Source: Macrostomum lignano (Eukaryota). From it: a DNA stretch of 64,000 nucleotides. Under the pieces are notes generated by a model. It made no database searches, had not been told where the DNA came from, and worked only from the letters and a program-made list of their open reading frames with translations. Below are positions 1 to 33,766 of this stretch, piece after piece; the stretch's first letter is position 1, and each line of letters starts with the position of its first letter. The position numbers and the translations under genes were made by a program. The stretch is from the NCBI GenBank assembly GCA_002269645.1, contig NIVC01002143.1:60768-124767 (forward strand), written 5' to 3'.

Positions 1-3000
1 CGGTGGCTCTGCAGCCCCATCGCATTCGGGTCTGTAGCAAACGGAAGCTGGTGATTGTAGTTGACAAAAGTGCCGGTGTTGTGGCCGTCTGTCGGCCTGA
101 CGGTCAGCTTGGGTTCAGCGTTGGGCCAAAGTTCAGCTGCCACAAGTTAGTGAACCCGATTTAATAAAGTATACTTTTGCACGATTTCATTTAAAGCTTG
201 AATTCCACTTTAGAAAGCTCGTGCAACACCCAGAGGACGCAGTGAGTACAGGTGACCAGCTCGTATTCTGCTGTCCAGACTCTGCGATCTTGATGGTGTC
301 CATCGCACGTCCTAAGAGTTGGCGTACGACACTCGTGAAGGAGCTGCTCAAGCTCAAAAGGCCTGTGCGTCTAGAGTGGCTGTTGAAGCCGAAGCTGCTA
401 ATCGTTCTTGACGAAGTTGGAAAGTGTCAGTATAAACTGTACGCATTTTCCATCTCCCTGACAAAGACGTCTGCTAATTTAAAAGTAAAGTCCCAGTCCA
501 GTGCTCCAGTGAAGTCCCTGGCCACTCCGTGCGTGCTGTGCAGCAGCAGCGGCACTCTGCTGTCTGTGCTGAGCTCTGAGGGACCGCAGATTGTCTGCAT
601 GGATGACGCCTGCACTTCAGTGCTGAGAACTGTTCGCTTATCGGTCAGGAAACCGGTGACTGACATGTGCTGGAGTGACCAGACACTGCTTGTCTGCTCC
701 GGTGGACAGGTTACTGATTGTGGCAGGTGAGAGAGCCTGAACTGTCACATTTTGATTGCGGAACAACCTGACCTGTGTGCTGCTTTATTTCCATTGCAGA
801 GAATACCAGTATTTTCCAAAGCTGACCAACAGTCAAGCTTCAGAGCTCAGCAAAGCTACTCAGCCTGGAGCCTCAGCTGTTCCACCCCAGACTCTGCTTA
901 CAGTGGGCTCGTCGGTACAAATTCACTCGGCTGCATTCCTGTCGGGCCAGTGCTTTTTTCTTCATCTGCAGTCTCCAGCTGTTCGAGTCTGCGACTCGGA
1001 GTCAAACCAAATTAGCAGCTTGTCAGTAACCAGCTCAGCTTCTGCGTCAGTTGCATCGCAGCAGCCGCGCGCTGTTCGAGTTTGCCGCAGCCGTCGCTTG
1101 GTGTTCATCGTATACCCGAGTGCGGTGCTCGTCTGCCAGCCAGATGGCCAGCTCAGCTTCCAGGTTGGGCCAAAGTTTAGCGACGCGTGAGTTTACTGAG
1201 CTCAATAGTTCATAAGCTGCCGTGTATCGAAGATAATTCGCAATTACAGAGTTTCATACATAATGAAACTGACAAAGTTCCATAATGGAAAAAGAGCCAT
1301 TTTGCAACATCTTTTCGAGGTTTACAAAGTTTCGTTCGGGTTGGGCAGCTCAGTGTCTCTTCCTTCTTACTGTTCCAACCAGCCACAGACGTCAGTCAGG
1401 AGCGGTTAGTATAGAATTTCAATCCGTTGCAGTCTTTGCTTTAGGCTTGACCGCAGAGTTTCATGGTCGGTTGTCATGATTACGCGGTAAAACAGTGGTC
1501 GCCAAACTCCGGCCTGCGGACCACATGGGCCCGCGAAGCTTCTTTATCCGGCCATCCGGTCCTTTCAAACTTCACAATAGCAATCCGGCCCGCTCAAGAT
1601 TGGTGTCTTTTCAGATCTCTCTCTCTGCTTTCTTCCCTCTCTTCTCTCCTCACTCCCATTTTTTCCTCTCTCCCCTCTCCCCTCCCTCCTCTCCTGTCTC
1701 CTCTCTCCCCCTTCTCCCCACTCTCCTTTTCTCCCTCTCCCTCTCCTCTCTTCCCTCTTCTTTCTCTCTCCATTCTTCTCTCTCATCTTCTATTCCCTCT
1801 CCTTTCCACTCTTATCAAACCCGCAGCCATTAGCTGGTTTCTTTATCTGGTCCTTGAGTTAAAATTTTCTAAACCAAGCACTCTTTCTGCACTGCTAACT
1901 GACTGTTTCCAATGCAGCTACAGCCTGGAAGCCCCAGAAGACGCTGTCAGCACCGGTCAGTTGCTCGCCATCTGCAGTCCCGAGTTCGCTCTCTACCTGG
2001 TGTCGCTAACCAAACCGGACGCCTGGCGGACCACCGTGCGGAAAGGCCGCTGCGACCTCGCCTGTCCGGTGCGTCTCGGCTGGATGGCCTCGCGCAAGTG
2101 GCTGGTGGTGGCCGACGAGACCGCGGCTGCGTCCACCGGGCGCAGAGTGCGACCCGGTGCGTACAGAATCCTGGCCTTTACCATCACTGTCATCAAGACA
2201 TCGGCCGCGCTGTCTCCGCAAGGATCTCCAGCGGGTGGAGTTCCGGTTGAGTCGCTGACTAGGCCGAGTCTGCTGTGCGGCCGGGATTGCATCTTGGTGT
2301 CTGTCAGCGGTACCAGCGGATCCAAAGTTCTTCTGCTGTCTGGCAGTCAGTGCGATTCAGTGCAACAGTTTACCGTTGAAGATGCGGGTTCTTCATTGGC
2401 TACTAACTTGTTTTGGTGGCAGCGAGAGCTGGCTTGTTGCCATGGAAACAAGCTACTACTCTGGCCGGAAATTAGCTATGAGAGGTTTGTCATTCTAAAT
2501 GTTTTTTTCAGCTGTTGTATTTTGCTATATCGACCCGGTCGCTTCCATTTTCACTCGGTTGCTTCAATTGTCACTCGGTTGCTTTTATTTTCTCTCTGTT
2601 GCTTAAATCATCACTCGGTTGCTTTACTTTTCACTCGGTTGCTTTAATTGTCACTCGGCTGCTTCAATTTTCACTCGGTTGCTTAAATTGTCACTCGGTC
2701 GCTTCAATTGTCACTCGGTCGCTTCACTTGTCACTCGGTCGCTTCAATTGTCACTCGCTCGCTTCAATTGTCACTCGGTTGCTTCAATTGTCACTCGGTT
2801 GCTTCAATTGTCACTCGGTCGCTTCAATTGTCACTCGGTCACTTCAATTGTCACTCGGTCGCTTCAATTGTCACTCGGTCGCTTCAATTTTTGTTCGGCT
2901 GCTCTTGCTGGCTTATTATTACTGATAAGAACCGAGCCAACCCAGAGCCAAAAGTGTCACTAGAAGCTGTTAATGTCCGCCATGCCAATTCCGCCACAGC

Positions 3001-3964
3001 TGCAGCAGTTGGACCCCATCAGCGGAGACAGCTGCGCCAAAACAGCAGAGTCCAGCTGATGTCACCTCTGACATCCTGGTTTCCTCAGCAGCCCGCCTGT
3101 CTGATCAGCTGTACATTCTGGAGCTGACTTCCAGATCCGTCCTAGTGGCATCAATGGACTGTCAGGACCGCCCGGCCAGCAGGCAGCCGCTGACGCTGAC
3201 CAAATCTGACGGCTCAAAGCTCAGCCCGCAGACAGCGCGAATCCGAGTCTGCGAGGAGCGCGGGCTTCTCATTCTCATTGATGAGCCGAGTCAAATTGTC
3301 TATGTCTGCAGCTCGGAGGGTAGACTGCAGTTTTCTGTTGGTCCTCGATTCAGCACCAAGTAAGGCGAATTTGATATTGTAATCATCTTTGCTCAATTGC
3401 CTGTAAAAATTAATTTCATTGTTCACCTTCCGGATCTGCAGCTTTCTGCTTTCTAAGCCATCAGATGCCATCAGCACTGGCGAGCTGCTGGCGATCTGCT
3501 CACCTGACAGGGGCCTCTACCTGGTGTCCCTGGCGCAGCCCAGTCAGTGGAGAACCACAATAAAAAAAGAGCGCAACAAGCTGCGCCGGCCGATCCGCCT
3601 GGCCTGGAGCGGCTCCCGCCAGCTGCTCATCGTGCTTGACGAAGTCTCCACCGACAGATTCTCCGTGAGCACCTTCCAGATCGTGAAGAGCCCTACTGCT
3701 GCCACGCTGCATCTCCAGGCCGCTCTTCGCGACCCCGTTCGCTCCCTGGCCGTCCCCAGCGTGCTGAGCAGCAGCGGCGGCTTCCTGCTGTCCGCACTCA
3801 CCGAGGAGGGGCCTCGGCTGCTGACCGTGGCCGCCGACTGCTCGGCTGTCAGCACCGTCGCCGACTGCCAGCTGCCTGCGGATGGCGGCGCCGTCACCGA
3901 CATGAGCTGGGCGGGGCGGCAGCTCTTGCTGTGCTGCGGCGGCAAGTTGATTCTTGACACCTGA
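1..3964 (+). CDS. Multi-beta-propeller (NHL-like) protein, paralog 1; 5'-truncated by window; 3 tandem six-bladed propellers
   Basis: Hand-spliced exons <1-145, 214-726, 800-1186, 1918-2484, 3000-3359, 3442-3964(TGA). Every intron is GT..AG, phase 2, and joins in frame. Recurrent motifs PxRIRVC..LVIVVD..VCxPDGxLxFxVGPxFS / PEDAVSTG..CxP / PVRLxW..LxVxDE / SLxxPxxL / VTDMxW resemble NHL blades. Bases 1-137 are nearly identical to ~5782-5918 of paralog 2. Confidence 0.8.
1610..1810. repeat. CT-rich low-complexity tract in intron
   Basis: Near-pure C/T run (ctctcc, ttctc) inside intron 1187-1917. Confidence 0.85.
2510..2890. repeat. 20-bp minisatellite (cttcaattgtcactcggtcg)
   Basis: Direct tandem copies inside intron 2485-2999. 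Confidence 0.95.
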
Positions 3965-4910
3965 AGTTAGTTGAGTTGGCATGCATTTACTTGTAGATTG
4001 GCTAAGTTGCTTACTAGCAGATAGTGCGAGTTACCAGTGAGCGTGTGCATGAGTGCGTGCGGTACTGGCGCGCTTGTATGTGCTTAGTAGTCAGCGGAAC
4101 GGGGCATGATGCCTACAGCTCTTCGATTTTGTATCTTTATTTATTCAAGCGTCTACTACTACTATCAAAAAAGAGATTTAGGCTAGCAATCAGGCTCACT
4201 ATCACCAGGCTCGCAGGTGTTATGCTCTCAGATAAGCCTGAAGCAAGCGGAAGGATCAGGAATAACCGGAACCAGACCAAACTGTCAAACTACTTGTCAA
4301 TCGGAGCCTGATAATTAAAGACTATTATGTAAACTTTAGCTCAAAAGATAGAGTCTCTTCTTATCCTTTTGCTTGTTCTCTCCTATCCTAGGTCCAATTT
4401 TTGTCACTTTTGCCAAATTCAGCTTACTGGTGTCACTGTGAGCAGAATGACGTATTATTTGTGTACATACATGTAGGTTACTCGGGCTCCACTTTATGAG
4501 CTTAAGTTGACAGGCCCTTTACTTCGTTTATTTTCGGTGTTAATCGATGGTGGCCAACCACGTGGCGAATTATTAATCTAAGCTGTGCTGTAATTTAACG
4601 CTTTTGTGTTGCCTCTGCATCGTTATTTGTGACTTTTCTGGCTGTACAGTGCATGCAGTGATTGCGATAGAGTTTTGTTTATGATTACTGCCTATTACTG
4701 TGTTATTTATTCAACACTTATTGCAGAGCAACTATTTGTTCAATACTGTGCCATATTCAATGCTCTATGAAAATAACATAGGCTGCCCTGTCAGCTCGTG
4801 TTGACATTTTATGACCATTGTTTTCTTCATTTTATTTAACTTCAAGGTAGGACTCAGAGCCTAGAAATTCGGTTTCTTATAGTTTCTATGGCAACGAATA
4901 ATATTTCAGC

Positions 4911-7900
4911 ATGGATTCGCCGGCCGTTGACGCCCTGCCGCAGCCCAGCAGCTTCGTTGAGCAGCTTCAACTGGCTGTGCAGAGGCGCCGTACTGCTGTG
5001 GCTGCGGAGATGGCCAGCCGAAGCCGGGCTCGAGACCGCCTGCGGGCCATCGTCGATATGGAGCTGCCAGCCTCTCTAGAGGAGCTGCTGGATGCTGAGG
5101 CTGTCTTGGATGAGGCTCTCAGTGATGAGTCCAGCTGGGCAATCAGCTGCTCTTGGGATGAGGCTGCGGCGGAGTCTGCGGCTATCGAACTGCTCAGAGT
5201 GATGAAGAAATTTCTTGATGCTTCAGGAGCTGAGTCAGCCACTGATTCGTCAAGTCAGGCTGTGTCAGCTACTGGTGCATCAAAACAGGCTGTGTCAGCT
5301 ACTGATTCGTCAAATCAGGCTGTGTCAGCTACTGGTGCATCAAAACAGGCTGTGTCAGCTACTGATTCGTCAAATCAGGCTGTGTCAGCTACTGATTCGT
5401 CAAAACAGGCTGTGTCAGCTACTGATTCGTCAAATCAGGCTGTGTCAGCTACTGGTGCATCAAAACAGGCTGTGTCAGCTACTGATTCGTCAAATCAGGC
5501 TGTGTCAGCTACTGGTGCATCAAAACAGGCTGCGTCAGCTACTGATTCGTCAAATCAGGCTGCGTCAGCTACTGGTGCATCTAAACAGGCTGTGTCAGCT
5601 ACTGATTCGTCAAATCAGGCTGCGTCAGCTACTGGTGCATCAAAACAGGCCGTGTCTGTCGCCAGCCTGTCAGGCCAGCTCCTTGTGCTGGAGCAGCCAT
5701 CAAATGTTATTCGGTTTTGCAATTCTTCTAGCCCAGCAATATTGATCCGTGACCTGACTGTGACGAACCCTGATGGGTCTGCGGTGGCTCTGCAACCCCA
5801 TCGCATTCGGGTCTGTAACAAACGGAAGCTGGTGATTGTAGTTGACAAAAGTGCCGGTGTTGTGGCCGTGTGTCGGCCTGACGGTCGGCTTGAGTTCAGC
5901 GTTGGGCCAAGGTTCAGCAAGAAAAGGTAGCTCAAAACTCTTAAAGTAATCAATGCTTTTTCGAGTTTTCTAATATGTTTGTATTTTGCATTGGAGTCAT
6001 GAAAGCCGTTGATTCACATTTAACAAGGGTTACCAATAGTAAATCCGAATTAAAGGGCCTAAATCTTTATATTTCAGGCTGCTGGAGCTGCCATTAGACG
6101 CAGTGAGCACGGAGAGCCGGCTGATGATCTGCTGCCCGAGCAACGGCATCTTTGCTGTGTACTTTGCCAATATTTCGGTCCGAACGGCCATCCCAAAGAA
6201 GATAATCGAACTGATGCGTCCTGTGCAGTTGGAGTGGCACTCGAAGCTTAAACAGCTAGTAGTTCTCGATGAAGTTGACAGCTGTCAGTACATGGTTAAA
6301 ATGTTTTCAGTTGGAAATGAAGCTGCATCCACTATCGGACTGAATCTCGTGTCCCAATCTAGTGTGCCAGTGAAGTCCCTGGCCACTCCGTGCGTGCTGT
6401 GCAGCAGCAGCGGCACTCTGCTCTCTGTATTGAGCAGTGAGGGACCGCAGATTGTCTGCATGAACGATACATGTACTTCCTTGATCGGTACTGTTAAACT
6501 CTCGGTCATGGAAACAGTTACTGACATGTGTTGGCGTAGCCAGACACTGATACTATGCTCTGCTGATGGAGTTTGTAGCTCAGTTCCTGAGAAATTCTTT
6601 GATGATACTTGTCGCAGGTGAGAGGACCGCTTCAGCTTCACCCCTCATTAAAGTGTAATAGCGCCGAATATTGACGTTCTCTAGTTTTGCTGTTTTTTAA
6701 ATTGCAGAGAACTGCGCTCAGGCTTGGTGAGTGCTGGCAGGGGTGCCCAACAATCAACATCGGTGCAGTCTAAGGAGACTATGCCGACTGCTCAGCCTGT
6801 GACTAAGGTGTCGCCTACTGGTGGAGTCGACTTTTCCACTTTTATCATCGCAGCGTCTGTATCTACATCAAGCTACGTAGTGTCGGCTGCCTGCTTGTCC
6901 AGTCGGATTTTCGCTACCACCCTCGCAGAGTCCCAGATTCGAGCATTCAGCTCCGAGGGAGCAGATTTGGGCCGCCTTGGCGTGTCTCGGCTGTCGCCGC
7001 ATCCCAGCCGCATCCGAGTATGCGACAAGCGCCAGCTGCTTATCATCCTGGATCAAGCTGGCCAAACTGTGACCGTCTGCCAACCAGATGGTCAACTGCG
7101 CTTTCAAGTTGGACCAAAGTTCAGCTGCAGGTTGGTTGGATTATTGCGATGCAATGGTCTCTGTCTTTACTGGCGAGAACATTCACGCAGCAAGCGTCTG
7201 AAATTTGGAATTTACAAGTGTAATAATTAACAAACTCTATAGATTTTAACAGAAATCGTTTTTCCTCTGTCCAGCTACAGCATCGAAAACCTGGAAGACG
7301 CGGTCAGCACTGGCAGTCTGCTGGCCATCTGCTGCTCCGACAAGGGCATTCTGTTTGTGTCGCTCCAGCATCCCAGCGCTTGGAAGACTGTCGTGAATAA
7401 AAGTAAAAAATTGAACAGATTGAGGCATCCGATTAGTCTGGCCTGGAGTAGCAAGTTGCAGAATCTGCTTGTTGTTGATGAGGTTGCCAGGCAACCAGAT
7501 GGCTACAGTCTCTACGCTTTCAAAGTGAATGCATTTAAAATGGCTGCCTCGCTGACTCTGCAGGCTGCTCATCCTGATGAAATTTTGTCACTGAGCAGGC
7601 CTTGCGTTCTGGCCAGCGATGAAGGCATCCTCGTCTCCGTGCTCACCGATGAGGGGCCAAGGATTCTGTGCCTGAGCAGCGACTGCTCAAGCATTGTTCG
7701 AATGGTCAGACTGAGCTTGGCTGGCGCTGTCAGAGACATGTGCTGGCTGCCGGACAGCCAGCTGGGCGTCTGCTGCGATGGCGGCTTGTGCGCGCCCCGC
7801 ACTGCTGGCGGCCTGCACCCTGAGAAGATGTTAGCAGCGACTGGGCCGCATTATTTCGAATATATTTTTCCTATTGTTGATCCAGAGTTACCTTCCCAGT

Positions 7901-10900
7901 TCGCTTTACTCATTCCCAGTTTAAATCTATAGTAGGTCCGCCGCCCTCCCAGATGCTGTGCCAGCCTCCCAGATCCTCAGTTGCTGTGTCACCCTCCCAG
8001 ATCCTCAGTTGCTGTGCCACCCTCCCAGATCCTCAGTTGCTGTGCCAGCCTCCCAGATCCTCAGTTGCTGTGCCAGCCTCCCAGATCCTCAGATCCTCAG
8101 TTGCTGTGCCAGCCTCCCAGATCCTCAGATCCTCAGTTGCTGTGCCAGCCTCCCAGATCCTCAGATCCTCAGTTACTGTGCCAGCCTCCCAGATCCCCAG
8201 ATCCTCAGTTGCTGTGCCAGCCTCCCAGATCCTCAGTTGCTGTGCCACCCTCCCAGATCCTTAGATCCTCAGTTGCTGTGCCACCCTCCCAGATCCTCAG
8301 TTGCTGTGCCACCCTCCCAGATCCTCAGATCCTCAGTTGCTGTGCCACCCTCCCAGATCCTCAGATCCTCAGTTGCTGTGCCAGCCTTCCAGATCCTCAG
8401 TTGCTGGGCCAGCCTCCCAGATCCTCAGTTGCTGTGCCAGCCTCCCAGATCCTCAGTTGCTGTGCCAGCCTCCCAGATTCTCAGTCCCCACTTGCTACAC
8501 ACCGGCACACTAATCTGCTGTTAATAATGCAAGCGGCGCAGGAAACTGAATTGCAGTGAGGACACCGACGCAAGCCACTCCGACAGTCCGTCTGCCGCCA
8601 TCGCTAGTCTGGTGCTGCTGACGCTCGCCACATCGAAACTGGCCGTCTCTGCCGGCGGGCTGGCCGACCGCTGCTTCATCCTGGAGCAGCCATCGGGAGC
8701 CATTCGGGTGTATGACTCCAGGGGCAGCCAGATCGGCCGGCTGACTTTGACAGGCCCCGCCGATGAGGCTATTCGGAATCTGCGACCCCACCGAGTTCGA
8801 ATCTGCAAACAGCGTCGGGTGGTCATTGTGGACAGGGCAAACTGCTCGGTGCTGGTCTGCGAGTCTGACGGCTCTCTGAGCTTCCGCGTTGGGCCGAACT
8901 TTGCCAATGACGGGTCAGACTTTGAGTAGAATATTTTACTGTTTGTTTGCTGCTCTAATCGCTGCGAGGCAAAGCAGGCGGTTTATCTTAGGCGTAGCTT
9001 AATTTGAGAGCTCATCTTGCAATAGTTAAGGGTGTAGTCAGAGCAAACCTTCTCGCCCACCGCCAACTTATTTGTGCGTATATTTCATTCTCGCACCCTA
9101 AATCTCTAGGGTCACAGATTAGGACTATCAATTGACTTCTGAAAGCCCATTGGCCGACATAACAGTGCACAAAATCATAATAACATAATAGCAAACTTGA
9201 GCACAGAGGCTAGAGGTAATTTGGGGTGGGGTGGGTCGCCCAGCCAATCAGAACTGGGTACGCGACAAACTGGGGCAGACGGGATGGGGGAGTGGGAATT
9301 ACGGAGGGTTTAGAGGGCAATGTCCGGCCCATCTGGCCAGAGATTGGTCATTGGTGCGGGTGCACCCGAGCGCAAAACTAACTCCACTTCCACTGTCTGC
9401 CTCTTTACGCTCCTCTGTTCCTTCTCCCTGCCCACTTTATCTCGTTTTTTAATCCTTTGATCAACCACTTTAATTCCTATTTCAGTCAACCAATGACCGC
9501 TCCGGAAGACGCAGTCAGCACGGGCCTGTTACTCGCCATCTGCAGCCCAGAGTTCGGGCTCTACCTGGTGTCGCTATCCGAGCCGGACGCCTGGCGGACC
9601 ACCGTGCGGAAAGGCCGCTGCGGTCTTGTTTGTCCGGTGCGCCTGGGCTGGCTGGCCTCGCGCAAGTGGCTGGTGGTGGCCGACGAGACGCCGAACTCCA
9701 ACCAGTACAGGCTGCTGGAATTCGTCATCAAAATTGGCAACAAGTCTGGCGGCGAGCAGCTGGCACCGCAGGGCTCGCCATTTGCTGTGCAGTCGCTGAG
9801 CAGGCCGAGCCTGCTGTGCGGAGACGACTTTGTCGTGCTAGCCATCGCCGAGTCGGTCGCGTCGCGCCTGCTCCTGCTGACGGGCAGCGGACTCCGGCTT
9901 ATTAGCCAATTCCACGTCAGCGGAGAAGATCCCATTGCCGATCTGTTTTGGTTAAAGCAGCCGCGTCAGCTAGTTGGTTGCCATGGCAACAAGCTGCGTC
10001 TCTGGCCGACGATCTGTTACGACAGTTGCGGCAGCTTTGAGGGGCCCTCGGAGGCGACGCCGCCGTTACCAGACGCGCCCGCCTCCATCGCCTGCCTGTC
10101 AGACCGCTGCTTTATTCTAAACCTGCCGTCCGGAACTGTCCGAGTGTCCGAATTGTTAATTAATGCCGTATCGAACGGGGACAAGCTTGCGCTGACCAAA
10201 CCGACCGGTGCCCAATTTGACGCGAGGCCAACGTGCGTCCGAGTCTGCGCCGAGCGCAACCGCCTCATCCTGGTTGACCAGACGGCTAACATGGTTCACC
10301 TGTGCAGCTCCGAGGGTCGCCTGTTTTTTTCAGTTGGTCCGCAGTTCACTAGCAGGTGAGCGGTAACTGTGATTTAGTTAGCTGTGCTCATTCCACTGAT
10401 TAATGTCAGGAGGCAGACAGGTTGAACTCGTAAGACGAAGCAGTCCAAGGCCCGTATATTTCAAGCAGCTGTGTATTCAAATTAGCGAATAATAATTACT
10501 AGCTATTAGCAAAAGCAAATTAAAACAAAAGGTACAGAGAACACAATCTCTTGTGTACCTTGGATGCGTACGCAGGCGCACACACTCACAGGGTGCACTG
10601 TGCACTCTGGCAAGATTTGTCTCATCGTCCTCAAAGAGGGTGCAGTTGGGAATCTCGGGCAGCGTTCTAGCATGCCTTTGCCCCGCCATGACAACGCAGC
10701 GCATTCGTTCGATGAGGCGTTTTGCCACCATGCAATACCGTCTCCAGAATGGTCCGCGCAGATGTTACTAATTGTAAAAGTGTAAACTTTCCCATAACAC
10801 AAGGCTTCAAAATTTCGCCCTGTTCTGTCAATTGGCAATCAAATCGTCGGTGTAGGCGTTGTTATCGGCGTCGACACCATCCTACGCGTCGTATTGGACT

Positions 10901-12006
10901 GCGAGACGCTGCTTCAATGGAGTTGAGGATCCACTTTCGTTAGTTGAGTACGACAGCTGTGACTGTCCCTGCCGGTGCAGCAAAATACACAAATCAATGT
11001 CAGGCTCATCCTCGTCTTCTGATTTAGTGCTTCGTTTAACATCCTTCGAAAACTGACCCTAGGATGAGGATTGAAAAGCAGCGCCTTATTTAGGGTTGTC
11101 CCCAAACTGATCATAAAACTGATCAAAACGCTATATTGCCTGGGCCAATACTGAATAAGATTTGACACTGCAAAGGTTGTATCAAGGCACACCTGCTTAC
11201 CTACTCTAGAGCCTATCATAGATAATAGAGTTACTTTAAAAACAAACAGTATATAAAACAGTCTATCACGCGATCGGAACTACTGTTTAGTTGATATGGA
11301 TTCTTGTGAAGATTCATGAACTACTACTGCTCAGTAGTCAGTCATTCACTAGTAAATGTGGGCTTTTGAAAAGGCGTGGTAGAATTCCGCTGTTTGCTTG
11401 CCCAGGTCGGCAATCAATTTCAGGTCAAATAATTATTCATATATTGCTTCAGTTTCGCAAGTGGACCCGGCCCTCTGCTTTTTCAGCTTGTCGCTGTCAA
11501 AGCCATCAGACGCCATCAGCACTGGCGAGCTGCTGGCGATCTGCTCGCCTGACAGGGGCCTCTTCCTGGTGTCCCTGGCGCAGCCCAGTCAGTGGAGAAC
11601 CAGCCTCAAGAAGGAGAACCACAATCTGAGCCGGCCGGTCCGCCTGGCCTGGAGCGGCTCCCGCCAGCTGCTCATCGTGCTTGACGAAGTCTTCATCGAC
11701 AGATTCTGCGTGAGCACCTTCGAGATCGTCACCATGCAGAGCGGCGCGTTTCTGTTTCGCCAGGCCACCCTGGGCGACCCCGTTCGCTCCCTGGCCGTCC
11801 CCAGCGTGCTGAGCAGCAGCGGCGGCTTCCTGCTGTCTGCGCTCACCGAGGAGGGGCCTCGGCTGCTGAGCGTGGCCGACGACTGCTCGGCTGTCAGCAC
11901 CGTCGCCGACTGCCAGCTGCCTGCGGATGGCGGCGCCGTCACCGACATGAGCTGGGCGGGGCGGCAGCTCTGGCTGTGCTGCGGTGGCAAGTTGATTGCG
12001 GCCTAA
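4911..12006 (+). CDS. Multi-beta-propeller (NHL-like) protein, paralog 2; coiled-coil leader + Ser/Ala repeat linker + 4 tandem propellers (~1426 aa)
   Basis: Exons 4911-5926, 6078-6617, 6708-7130, 7275-7829, 8557-8913, 9486-10355, 11487-12006(TAA). All six introns are phase 2; internal exons are multiples of 3 (540, 423, 555, 357, 870 nt); total 4281 nt. The terminal exon is paralogous to 3442-3964. Confidence 0.85.
5236..5660 (+). repeat. Coding 30-bp minisatellite ([20 protein letters not shown])
   Basis: About 14 in-frame 10-codon units within exon 4911-5926. Confidence 0.95.
7945..8485. repeat. 28/37-bp minisatellite (ccagatcctcagttgctgtgccagcctc)
   Basis: Tandem copies inside intron 7830-8556. 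Confidence 0.95.
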
Positions 12007-12087
12007 GGCGCGTTCGGTTAGCTAAGCTCTGCTGCTCTAACATCCTTGGTTAACCAATCAATCAGAGCGTCCGTATTTGGTTTGTGA

Positions 12088-12535
12088 CTCAGATACCAGA
12101 GTAACTAGATAAGCCACTTAGCACATTTGCGTGTAAGCTACTTTCAGTTCAGTAGTAAATTTAACAGAAGAATTTTATTGTATTTTTAAAGCCAAGGCTC
12201 ATTTATTGGGTCTTAACAAACCACCCTAGCTGAAAGCACCCAACCGCGTCTTTCCACACTGCCTCCGCCCCGCCCCGCTTCGCCCCGCCCCAAATTTTAT
12301 TGCCTTTCTCAGAATTCCAGCCTAAAGCTGCCATGCACATTTCAGTAGACTGGCTAATGTACATTATTGCTAACCAAGCCTGCACGCTTGGGCTTCTAAA
12401 CTTACTAAGTCATTTCAGCTGCCTTTATTCTTATAAAATAGCTTATGTGTTCTTATTTGCTACTGAACTGAAAGTAGAAAGCTGTTTCCTAAGTATATAC
12501 GCCTGAGTGGCCTATCTAGTTATCTTATTATCTGT
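12088..12535 (-). mobile_element. ~450-bp MITE-like element, copy 1
   Basis: Imperfect ~30-bp TIRs (ctcagataccagagtaactagataagccac / gtggcctatctagttatcttattatctgtg). The internal sequence is the reverse complement of 20228-20682 and 61781-62221. Confidence 0.8.

Positions 12536-15646: not shown

Positions 15647-33766
<18,120 letters not shown>

Follow-up and report, generated by a model that had tools for sequence, protein, structure and literature searches.

Genes at the locus

The stretch of DNA analysed here, referred to as the window, comprises 64,000 nucleotides of contig NIVC01002143.1 (assembly GCA_002269645.1, Mlig_3_7) of the free-living flatworm Macrostomum lignano. Its composition is eukaryotic (about 50% G+C and rich in minisatellites) and the closest protein matches of its genes all come from this species. 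Positions 1-12006 of the + strand, to which the gene coordinates below refer, hold two tandem paralogous genes. These genes, gene 1 and gene 2, encode strings of three and four copies, respectively, of a unit that profile comparisons and predicted structures identify as a six-bladed beta-propeller of the TRIM-NHL lineage. The start of gene 1 lies outside the window, 1413 bp to its left, and the stop is at 3964; gene 2 spans 4911-12006 (or 4944-12006, see below). The spacer between them (3965-4910, about 950 bp) carries AG acceptors at 4908-4909 and 4942-4943. A third gene of the same family, PAA60522.1 (733 aa), lies on the same strand 947 bp upstream of gene 1 (locus L001, positions 1-9021; window position 1 is position 5058 of L001), and the two intergenic spacers of the array measure 947 and 980 bp. 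Thus, what an earlier note made from the sequence alone had called a tandem gene pair is indeed a pair of paralogues, but they are the last two members of a three-gene same-strand tandem array, the first of the two being cut by the window edge. No further family copies are present in the remainder of the window (12-64 kb, both strands).

Exon-intron structure

Three-frame translation of positions 1-12300 reveals two alternating kinds of open segment, A and B, along the + strand. Segments of type A end in ...PxRIRVC..R.L.I.VD.....V.VC..DG.L.F.VGPxFS and those of type B in ...V.DM.W....L..C.GG.L, and each is flanked by a good acceptor and a good donor. Splicing them at GT-AG sites yields two stop-free frames in which all 13 exons are open. 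Every one of the 11 introns within the window is of the GT...AG kind and in phase 2 (gene 1: 146-213, 727-799, 1187-1917, 2485-2999 and 3360-3441; gene 2: 5927-6077, 6618-6707, 7131-7274, 7830-8556, 8914-9485 and 10356-11486). The earlier note had remarked on this uniform phase; since all eleven introns trace back to just two ancestral positions, A|B and B|A, the agreement counts as only two independent observations.

In gene 1 the 3' end of exon 1 (3-145) is of type A and encodes blade 2 of unit 1. It is followed by exon 2 (214-726; type B, blades 3-6 of unit 1), exon 3 (800-1186; linker plus type A, blades 1-2 of unit 2), exon 4 (1918-2484; type B, blades 3-6 of unit 2), exon 5 (3000-3359; linker plus type A, blades 1-2 of unit 3) and exon 6 (3442-3964; type B, blades 3-6 of unit 3 and the stop codon). 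These exons match the deposited protein P0012 (1202 aa), which is identical to our gene 1 model across the part inside the window, and the junction of exon 3 is found in P0003 as well. Exon 1 of gene 2 (4911-5926) encodes a helical acidic head (residues 1-109; 4911-5237), a 20-aa repeat specified by a 60-bp minisatellite of 7.1 copies (5229-5656) and blades 1-2 of unit 1 (5643-5926, located with the unit hidden Markov model (HMM) and AlphaFold2). The further exons are exon 2 (6078-6617; type B, blades 3-6 of unit 1, also seen in the AlphaFold2 model), exon 3 (6708-7130; linker plus type A, unit 2), exon 4 (7275-7829; type B, unit 2; its junction with exon 5 also occurs in P0004), exon 5 (8557-8913; linker plus type A, unit 3), a fused exon 6 (9486-10355) and exon 7 (11487-12006; type B, blades 3-6 of unit 4 and the stop codon). 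Exon 6 combines B3 and A4: blades 3-6 of unit 3 extend to about 10023 and, after a linker, blades 1-2 of unit 4 begin at about 10072. The donor of exon 5 lies at 8914; the next GT, at 8926, was ruled out, both P0002 and P0007 using 8914. The gene 2 model is identical from residue 12 onward to P0007 (PAA60524.1, BOX15_Mlig023818g2, 'hypothetical protein, partial', 1415 aa). The deposited M. lignano gene models derive from a genome-guided StringTie/TACO assembly of RNA sequencing (RNA-seq) data (PMC5730564).

The two genes also corroborate each other. At the junction of intron 2485-2999 the spliced product of gene 1 reads ISYE|SCSSW, collinear with the unspliced ICYDSCGSF of gene 2. Moreover, their exons can be aligned at 70-96% nucleotide identity, whereas the introns cannot be aligned at all. 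The short open reading frames (ORFs) in this region are exons of two real genes, as the earlier note had proposed, because the deposited proteins match, the two genes are collinear at this junction, and only exons are alignable, with a ratio of nonsynonymous to synonymous substitution rates (dN/dS) of 0.25-0.5.

Several repeats accompany these genes. Intron 4 of gene 1 (2485-2999, 515 bp, phase 2) consists for two-thirds of a 20-bp minisatellite (2536-2889, 17.7 copies) and sits exactly where B3 and A4 are fused in gene 2 (9990-10080). The other intronic repeats are a CT-rich tract at 1664-1790 and a minisatellite of 28/36/64-bp units at 7950-8496, within intron 4 of gene 2 (7830-8556). Several frames are open across such repeats, which gives rise to long spurious ORFs, for instance at 2515-2925, 7958-8524 and 7981-8559. 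The copy number of the coding 60-bp minisatellite differs among paralogues and allelic models (P0001, P0006, P0012 and P0017; window 5229-5656, L001 3950-5100). Compared with the deposited P0012, the uninterrupted genomic ORF of gene 1 exon 1 has an extra 100 aa (five 60-bp units), and the P0012 model has probably collapsed or 'spliced' part of the coding repeat.

The repeated unit is an NHL-type propeller

The unit HMM recovers copies of 265-279 aa, four full ones in gene 2 and, in gene 1, three of which the first is cut by the window edge, in line with the unit of about 265 aa in three and four copies that the earlier note had reported. The seven units are mutually 32-63% identical across their full length. 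Each of them is made up of one two-blade exon (A) and one four-blade exon (B). Projected onto the AlphaFold2 model, A encodes the inter-propeller linker and blades 1-2 and B encodes blades 3-6, and the position of the A|B intron is in the loop that connects blade 2 to blade 3.

The prediction for unit 3 of gene 2 has a mean predicted local distance difference test score (pLDDT) of 88.3 and a predicted template modelling score (pTM) of 0.89, and shows 23-24 strands arranged in six four-stranded blades that form a closed propeller. Unit 1 of the same gene, modelled within residues 1-519, likewise gives a closed six-bladed propeller, again with 23-24 strands (pLDDT about 90). A Foldseek comparison of unit 3 with the PDB returned the propellers of TRIM-NHL proteins (TRIM2, TRIM71, Thin, TRIM3, Lin41 and Brat) as the sixteen best matches, with expected values (E) of 2e-10 to 4e-8 and, across some 285 aligned columns, template modelling (TM) scores of 0.65-0.71. 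Lower in the ranking come WD40 propellers, lactonases and PAL. Unit 1 gave the same outcome, again with TRIM-NHL domains on top. The six blade-like segments that had been counted in the bare sequence, and the NHL-like propeller proposed from them, are thereby recovered in both units that were modelled.

The relationship is also detectable at the level of sequence, provided that profiles are used. Pfam NHL (PF01436) gives at best 16.6 bits (E=0.0083) to one repeat of gene 2 unit 3, below its 20-bit gathering cut-off. A profile of the seven units matches the NHL domains of TRIM3 (E=2.9e-5), TRIM2 and TRIM71 in the PDB, and a profile built from 13 units of the family matches Thin (2.5e-11), TRIM2/3 (6e-8), TRIM71 (1e-6) and Brat (4e-6); for NHLRC2, an NHL protein outside the TRIM family, the latter profile yields E=0.03. 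In fact, blade 2 keeps a near-canonical NHL repeat (PxRIRVC..LIVVD...V.VC..DG.L.F.VGP). Taken together, the profile matches and the structural models identify the units as six-bladed beta-propellers homologous to those of TRIM-NHL proteins, and as diverged members of that lineage. WD40 identity was considered as well and rejected: Pfam WD40 does not match, and WD40 structures rank below all NHL domains, with lower TM scores.

Head, spacer and missing domains

The head of gene 2 is an acidic stretch of 109 aa (isoelectric point (pI) 4.3) for which AlphaFold2 predicts a helix of 38 residues (12-49, pLDDT 75-86) and two weaker helices (59-70 and 84-106). It is homologous to the heads of the single-propeller members described below, and family members have the motif FFDxxIxxLExRRxEL ... 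RRTxRLLxxLxIxW in common. The earlier note had described this part as a coiled-coil leader. Its helical nature agrees with the prediction, but the coiled coil finds no counterpart in homology: the family head profile retrieved nothing significant from the PDB or Pfam, and TRIM_CC was found in one of seven members, at E=0.028. The head is followed by a spacer in which the 20-aa repeat, rich in Ser, Ala, Thr and Gln, occurs in seven copies; with a pLDDT below 30 it is predicted to be disordered, and its length differs among family members.

Pfam recognised neither a RING nor a B-box nor any other domain in the products of gene 2 and full-length gene 1 (P0012) or in their relatives. The head contains a single Cys, and the sequence that precedes the propellers shows no Cys/His pattern, which agrees with the absence of RING and B-box noted before. 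Lacking a RING, the proteins cannot be E3 ligases themselves. The Pfam scan likewise revealed no signalling or effector domain, and on reading the sequences by eye neither a signal peptide nor a membrane-spanning segment was apparent.

Distribution and evolution of the family

An exhaustive hmmsearch of 1.84 billion cluster representatives returned 22 proteins. The 15 strong matches (E<=2e-20) apparently all belong to M. lignano (the source was checked for most of them), and the matches in the weak tail (E 1e-6 to 5e-4) are for the most part proteins with NHL repeats or related beta-propellers, either generic or bacterial. With profiles as queries, two word-indexed searches brought in only further M. 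lignano proteins and none from another species; a word-indexed search with the whole of gene 2 returned a single allelic model, the low-complexity repeat having probably swamped the candidates. On present data the family thus looks lineage-specific and limited to one flatworm lineage, as had been suggested.

Within M. lignano the number of propellers per protein ranges from one to four. Single-propeller members include P0019, P0021, P0022, P0024 and others; P0038 has two propellers, gene 1 three and gene 2 four, and P0049 has 3.5 in a model that is truncated at its 5' end. By similarity, units 1, 2 and 3 of gene 1 correspond to units 1, 3 and 4 of gene 2. It is because of this unit-to-unit similarity that gene 1 can be said to lack exactly the A2+B2 pair, which is present in gene 2 and in P0049. 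Both exon types are symmetric (2-2), and whole A+B pairs can therefore be duplicated or deleted in frame. The comparison of the paralogues indicates that entire propellers have been gained or lost in this manner during the evolution of the family, which bears out the symmetric exon duplication proposed earlier.

The divergence between gene 1 and gene 2 is uneven. Synonymous divergence (dS) is 0.06 in exon A1 and 0.16 in the last exon, and 0.9-2.1 elsewhere; the near-identical segment pairs are 1-145 with 5782-5926 and 3442-3964 with 11487-12006, and the two heads are about 94% identical. The value of dN/dS cited above (0.25-0.5) pertains to the old segments. A dS mosaic of this kind is typically left by gene conversion at the ends of genes duplicated in tandem, and homology between the upstream spacers of the two genes starts only about 40 bp before the ATG. 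Both observations indicate that the genes duplicated long ago and that gene conversion has acted recently on either end.

The single- and double-propeller members reside in tandem clusters of their own, on contigs of 215 kb, 1.05 Mb and 1.57 Mb (PAA61801-PAA61810, PAA91365-PAA91373 and PAA93908-PAA93911). These clusters are three near-identical copies, which is consistent with the duplicated genome of M. lignano. Some UniProt models fuse these members with immunoglobulin (Ig)-domain genes, as also happens beside the array in the window. Fragments of the family bear a scatter of automatic UniProt names: MMS1_N, STXB5, ANAPC4_WD40, WDR73, PHTB1_N, CNH, RIC1, DUF295, WD_REPEATS_REGION and 'Nuclear pore complex protein' (in P0002-P0005, P0013-P0015, P0025, P0026, P0037 and P0045-P0048). 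All of these are generic labels of the propeller type and none recognises the relationship with NHL.

Possible co-transcription and trans-splicing

Both genes have TTTCAG|C directly before the ATG (window 4900-4950 for gene 2, L001 3580-3650 for gene 1). This sequence fits the spliced leader (SL) acceptor motif of M. lignano, [T/C]TNCAG, and the spliced leader itself ends in ATG (PMC8629364). The deposited 'partial' coding sequence (CDS) of gene 2 begins at the second acceptor, CCGCAG|CCC, with 4944 as first exon base, where the ATG of a spliced leader would be in frame and give M-PSSFVEQ. The criteria for SL-resolved operons of this species are same-strand neighbours less than 1 kb apart and SL trans-splicing of the downstream gene (PMC8629364). 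The locus tag of gene 2 carries the suffix 'g2'. Because the spacers are shorter than 1 kb, TTTCAG precedes the ATGs, the deposited CDS starts at 4944 and the tag reads 'g2', the arrangement suggests that genes 1 and 2 are co-transcribed and resolved by spliced-leader trans-splicing.

Comparison with known propeller proteins

The TRIM-NHL proteins (class VII TRIMs: Brat, Mei-P26, Thin/TRIM32, TRIM2, TRIM3 and LIN-41/TRIM71) have in common with genes 1 and 2 the six-bladed NHL propeller (TM 0.6-0.7) and a helical region N-terminal to it. To our knowledge, which includes searches of the PDB and the literature, the NHL propeller of these proteins occurs once per protein, behind RING, B-box and coiled coil. 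In contrast, the products of genes 1 and 2 lack RING, B-box and filamin domain, carry three or four propellers instead of a single C-terminal one, and have a disordered, minisatellite-encoded spacer as well as a head without significant similarity to the TRIM coiled coil. The single-propeller paralogues of M. lignano listed above (including P0019-P0027) are much closer: they have the head motif, a low-complexity middle region, the same propeller and the motifs PEDAVSTG and PVRLAW, and they too are hypothetical proteins without a Pfam match. They differ in having one propeller (two in P0038/P0020) and an extra ADNPFA motif after the head, and in their location on other contigs.

Strings of propellers are known from other protein classes. 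LRP5/6 and LRP1 contain up to four tandem six-bladed YWTD propellers per chain and serve as multivalent ligand platforms. The likeness is by analogy only: those propellers belong to the YWTD/LDLR class B type, and they sit in extracellular proteins that also have EGF spacers, a signal peptide and a membrane-spanning segment. Homology between them and the flatworm proteins was not detected. Bacterial multi-NHL-repeat proteins (for example P0034, P0029 and P0030) similarly contain many NHL repeats and several propellers per chain, and they are found among the weak tail of the matches to the unit profile. Unlike the flatworm proteins they are secreted or located at the cell surface, have Por or CHU_C sorting domains and possess canonical Pfam NHL repeats, and the similarity of the family to them is much weaker than that to the TRIM-NHL domains. 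Genes 1 and 2 are a clear case of propeller multiplication by exon cassettes, in an unusual architecture of several NHL propellers without a RING.

A literature search found no paper in which 'Macrostomum lignano' and 'NHL' appear together, and no description of tandem NHL propellers in flatworms or of tandem TRIM-NHL-type propellers in eukaryotes. The system had been put forward as a candidate for an undescribed one, which needs a qualification: the genes themselves had been deposited previously, solely as 'hypothetical protein' without a domain call.

As modules that bind RNA and proteins, TRIM-NHL propellers play key parts in the regulation of stem cells, germline and neurons. The genes described here show that the same propeller can leave its ubiquitin-ligase context and be strung three or four times in one chain, and they display a simple mechanism for changing its copy number: a two-blade exon and a four-blade exon with phase-2 borders. 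In practical terms, a set of GenBank 'hypothetical proteins' gains a domain assignment and the inconsistent automatic names in UniProt are corrected. The family is also experimentally tractable, because M. lignano serves as a model for regeneration and stem cells in which transgenesis and RNA interference are available (PMC5730564).

Proposed function and alternatives

We consider it fairly probable that these string-of-propellers genes encode cytoplasmic, non-catalytic, multivalent binding scaffolds, which is the simplest reading because there is no catalytic or signalling domain. In such a scaffold the head would mediate self-association, likewise in the single-propeller relatives, and the floppy spacer would let the propeller string extend outward. 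Each propeller could offer a separate ligand surface, defined by its loops, for protein or RNA, so that a single molecule might engage several ligands or, where a ligand is repeated, hold it with high avidity. Over 17 units of the family conservation is higher in the strands (0.58) than in the loops of the two faces (0.49 and 0.46), and the nominal top loops have a net charge of -2 to +4 per unit, the latter being a count of loop charges under a crude assignment of loops to faces. Because the loops are less conserved than the strands and their charge varies in this way, the propellers probably present differing surfaces. By the same crude loop analysis a strongly basic RNA-binding face is not evident, and protein or mixed ligands appear somewhat more likely than RNA alone.

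A number of points weigh against this scaffold. The structural models cover two of the seven units, and for the other five the fold is deduced from their 32-63% identity. For the head, whose coiled coil and self-association are putative, no significant coiled-coil or TRIM_CC homology was found. The cytoplasmic location is deduced solely from the lack, judged by eye, of an obvious signal peptide or membrane-spanning segment, and the units are fairly rich in Cys (8-14 per unit). The putative trans-splicing is deduced from sequence and annotation. Finally, Mlig023818, Mlig024027, Mlig001956, Mlig001862, Mlig016611 and Mlig019517 are absent from the main texts searched, and the first five of these also from the supplements of three M. 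lignano papers.

The main competitor holds that the proteins are sequence-specific RNA-binding post-transcriptional regulators in the style of Brat, LIN-41/TRIM71 or Mei-P26, but with each molecule carrying several propellers that bind RNA. This is possible but distinctly less probable than the scaffold. The nearest relatives by sequence and fold are indeed RNA-binding TRIM-NHL propellers, and the units are mildly basic overall (pI 7.1-8.9). However, some propellers of this class, such as those of TRIM2/3 and Thin, are better known for protein interactions, and the loops of the flatworm units are poorly conserved between units. In Brat, Lin41 and Mei-P26 the RNA is contacted via a positively charged top surface of the NHL domain (PMC9070667), whereas the net charge of the top loops estimated here is not consistently positive. 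The earlier note had also raised an 'immune-type receptor', that is, a rapidly diversifying recognition family with variable propeller arrays directed at non-self molecules or selfish elements. The family is lineage-restricted, expanded and arranged in tandem arrays, its propeller number varies, variable loops decorate a conserved core, dN/dS is moderately high (0.25-0.65) and there is evidence of gene conversion. Nevertheless, dN/dS stays below 1 in each segment with enough substitutions to judge, and the proteins have neither a Pfam signalling or effector domain nor, by eye, a signal peptide or membrane-spanning segment, so that we regard this role as unlikely. For neither of these two suggestions of the earlier note was direct support found.

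It is very unlikely that the propellers serve as enzymes, like six-bladed lactonases, strictosidine synthase or PAL, instead of as binding modules. Drp35 lactonase, PAL and strictosidine synthase do occur among the Foldseek matches (E about 2e-7 to 8e-7), but they rank under all TRIM-NHL domains, the significant profile matches in the PDB are TRIM-NHL proteins only, and Pfam SGL, Arylesterase and Str_synth give no match (a metal-binding constellation was not searched for). We attach hardly any weight to the idea that these are not two functional genes at all, the ORFs being instead single-module genes in their own right, the remains of decaying pseudogenes or an artefact of annotation. The many short ORFs with in-frame stops just beyond each donor, and the many fragmentary or fused UniProt models of the locus (P0001-P0006 and P0018), could give that impression. 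It is countered by the complete set of open exons joined in frame at canonical junctions, by RNA-seq-guided models that span the exons exactly, by a dN/dS below 1 while the introns have diverged beyond alignment, and by the collinearity of the spliced product of gene 1 with an unspliced stretch of gene 2. A broader and rather doubtful extrapolation holds that M. lignano has converted the TRIM-NHL propeller into its own RING-less modular recognition family. Cassette gain and loss and gene conversion in possibly operonic tandem arrays would then yield proteins in which a self-associating head carries one to four propellers with different surfaces, as a multivalent and diversifying system of RNA or protein recognition that has no parallel in other animals. 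If it were true, a role against transposons or viruses, or in RNA control in germline or neoblasts, might be considered.

Other features of the window

Downstream of gene 2, positions 17225-30500 of the + strand contain at least one gene with helical repeats (sub-threshold matches to Spectrin) and several I-set immunoglobulin domains, which we take, as an impression only, to be possibly obscurin/UNC-89-like. A GenBank model of 1213 aa starts near position 21880. The UniProt model P0018 wrongly fuses duplicated copies of the last exon of gene 2, a TBP-like piece and this Spectrin/I-set gene.

The rest of the window is studded with long minisatellite arrays, for instance 'SVCL/DRQT' arrays of the (GTCT)n type, in which several frames of either strand are open. 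They are located at 13.6-14.2, 15.9-16.7, 19.3-19.9, 21.9-22.6, 24.1-24.6, 30.4-31.0, 44.2-45.0, 47.3-48.4, 48.9-49.4, 52.9-54.7, 57.1-58.0 and 59.6-61.4 kb. Their abundance is consistent with the tandem-repeat content of 15% reported for the M. lignano genome (PMC5730564).

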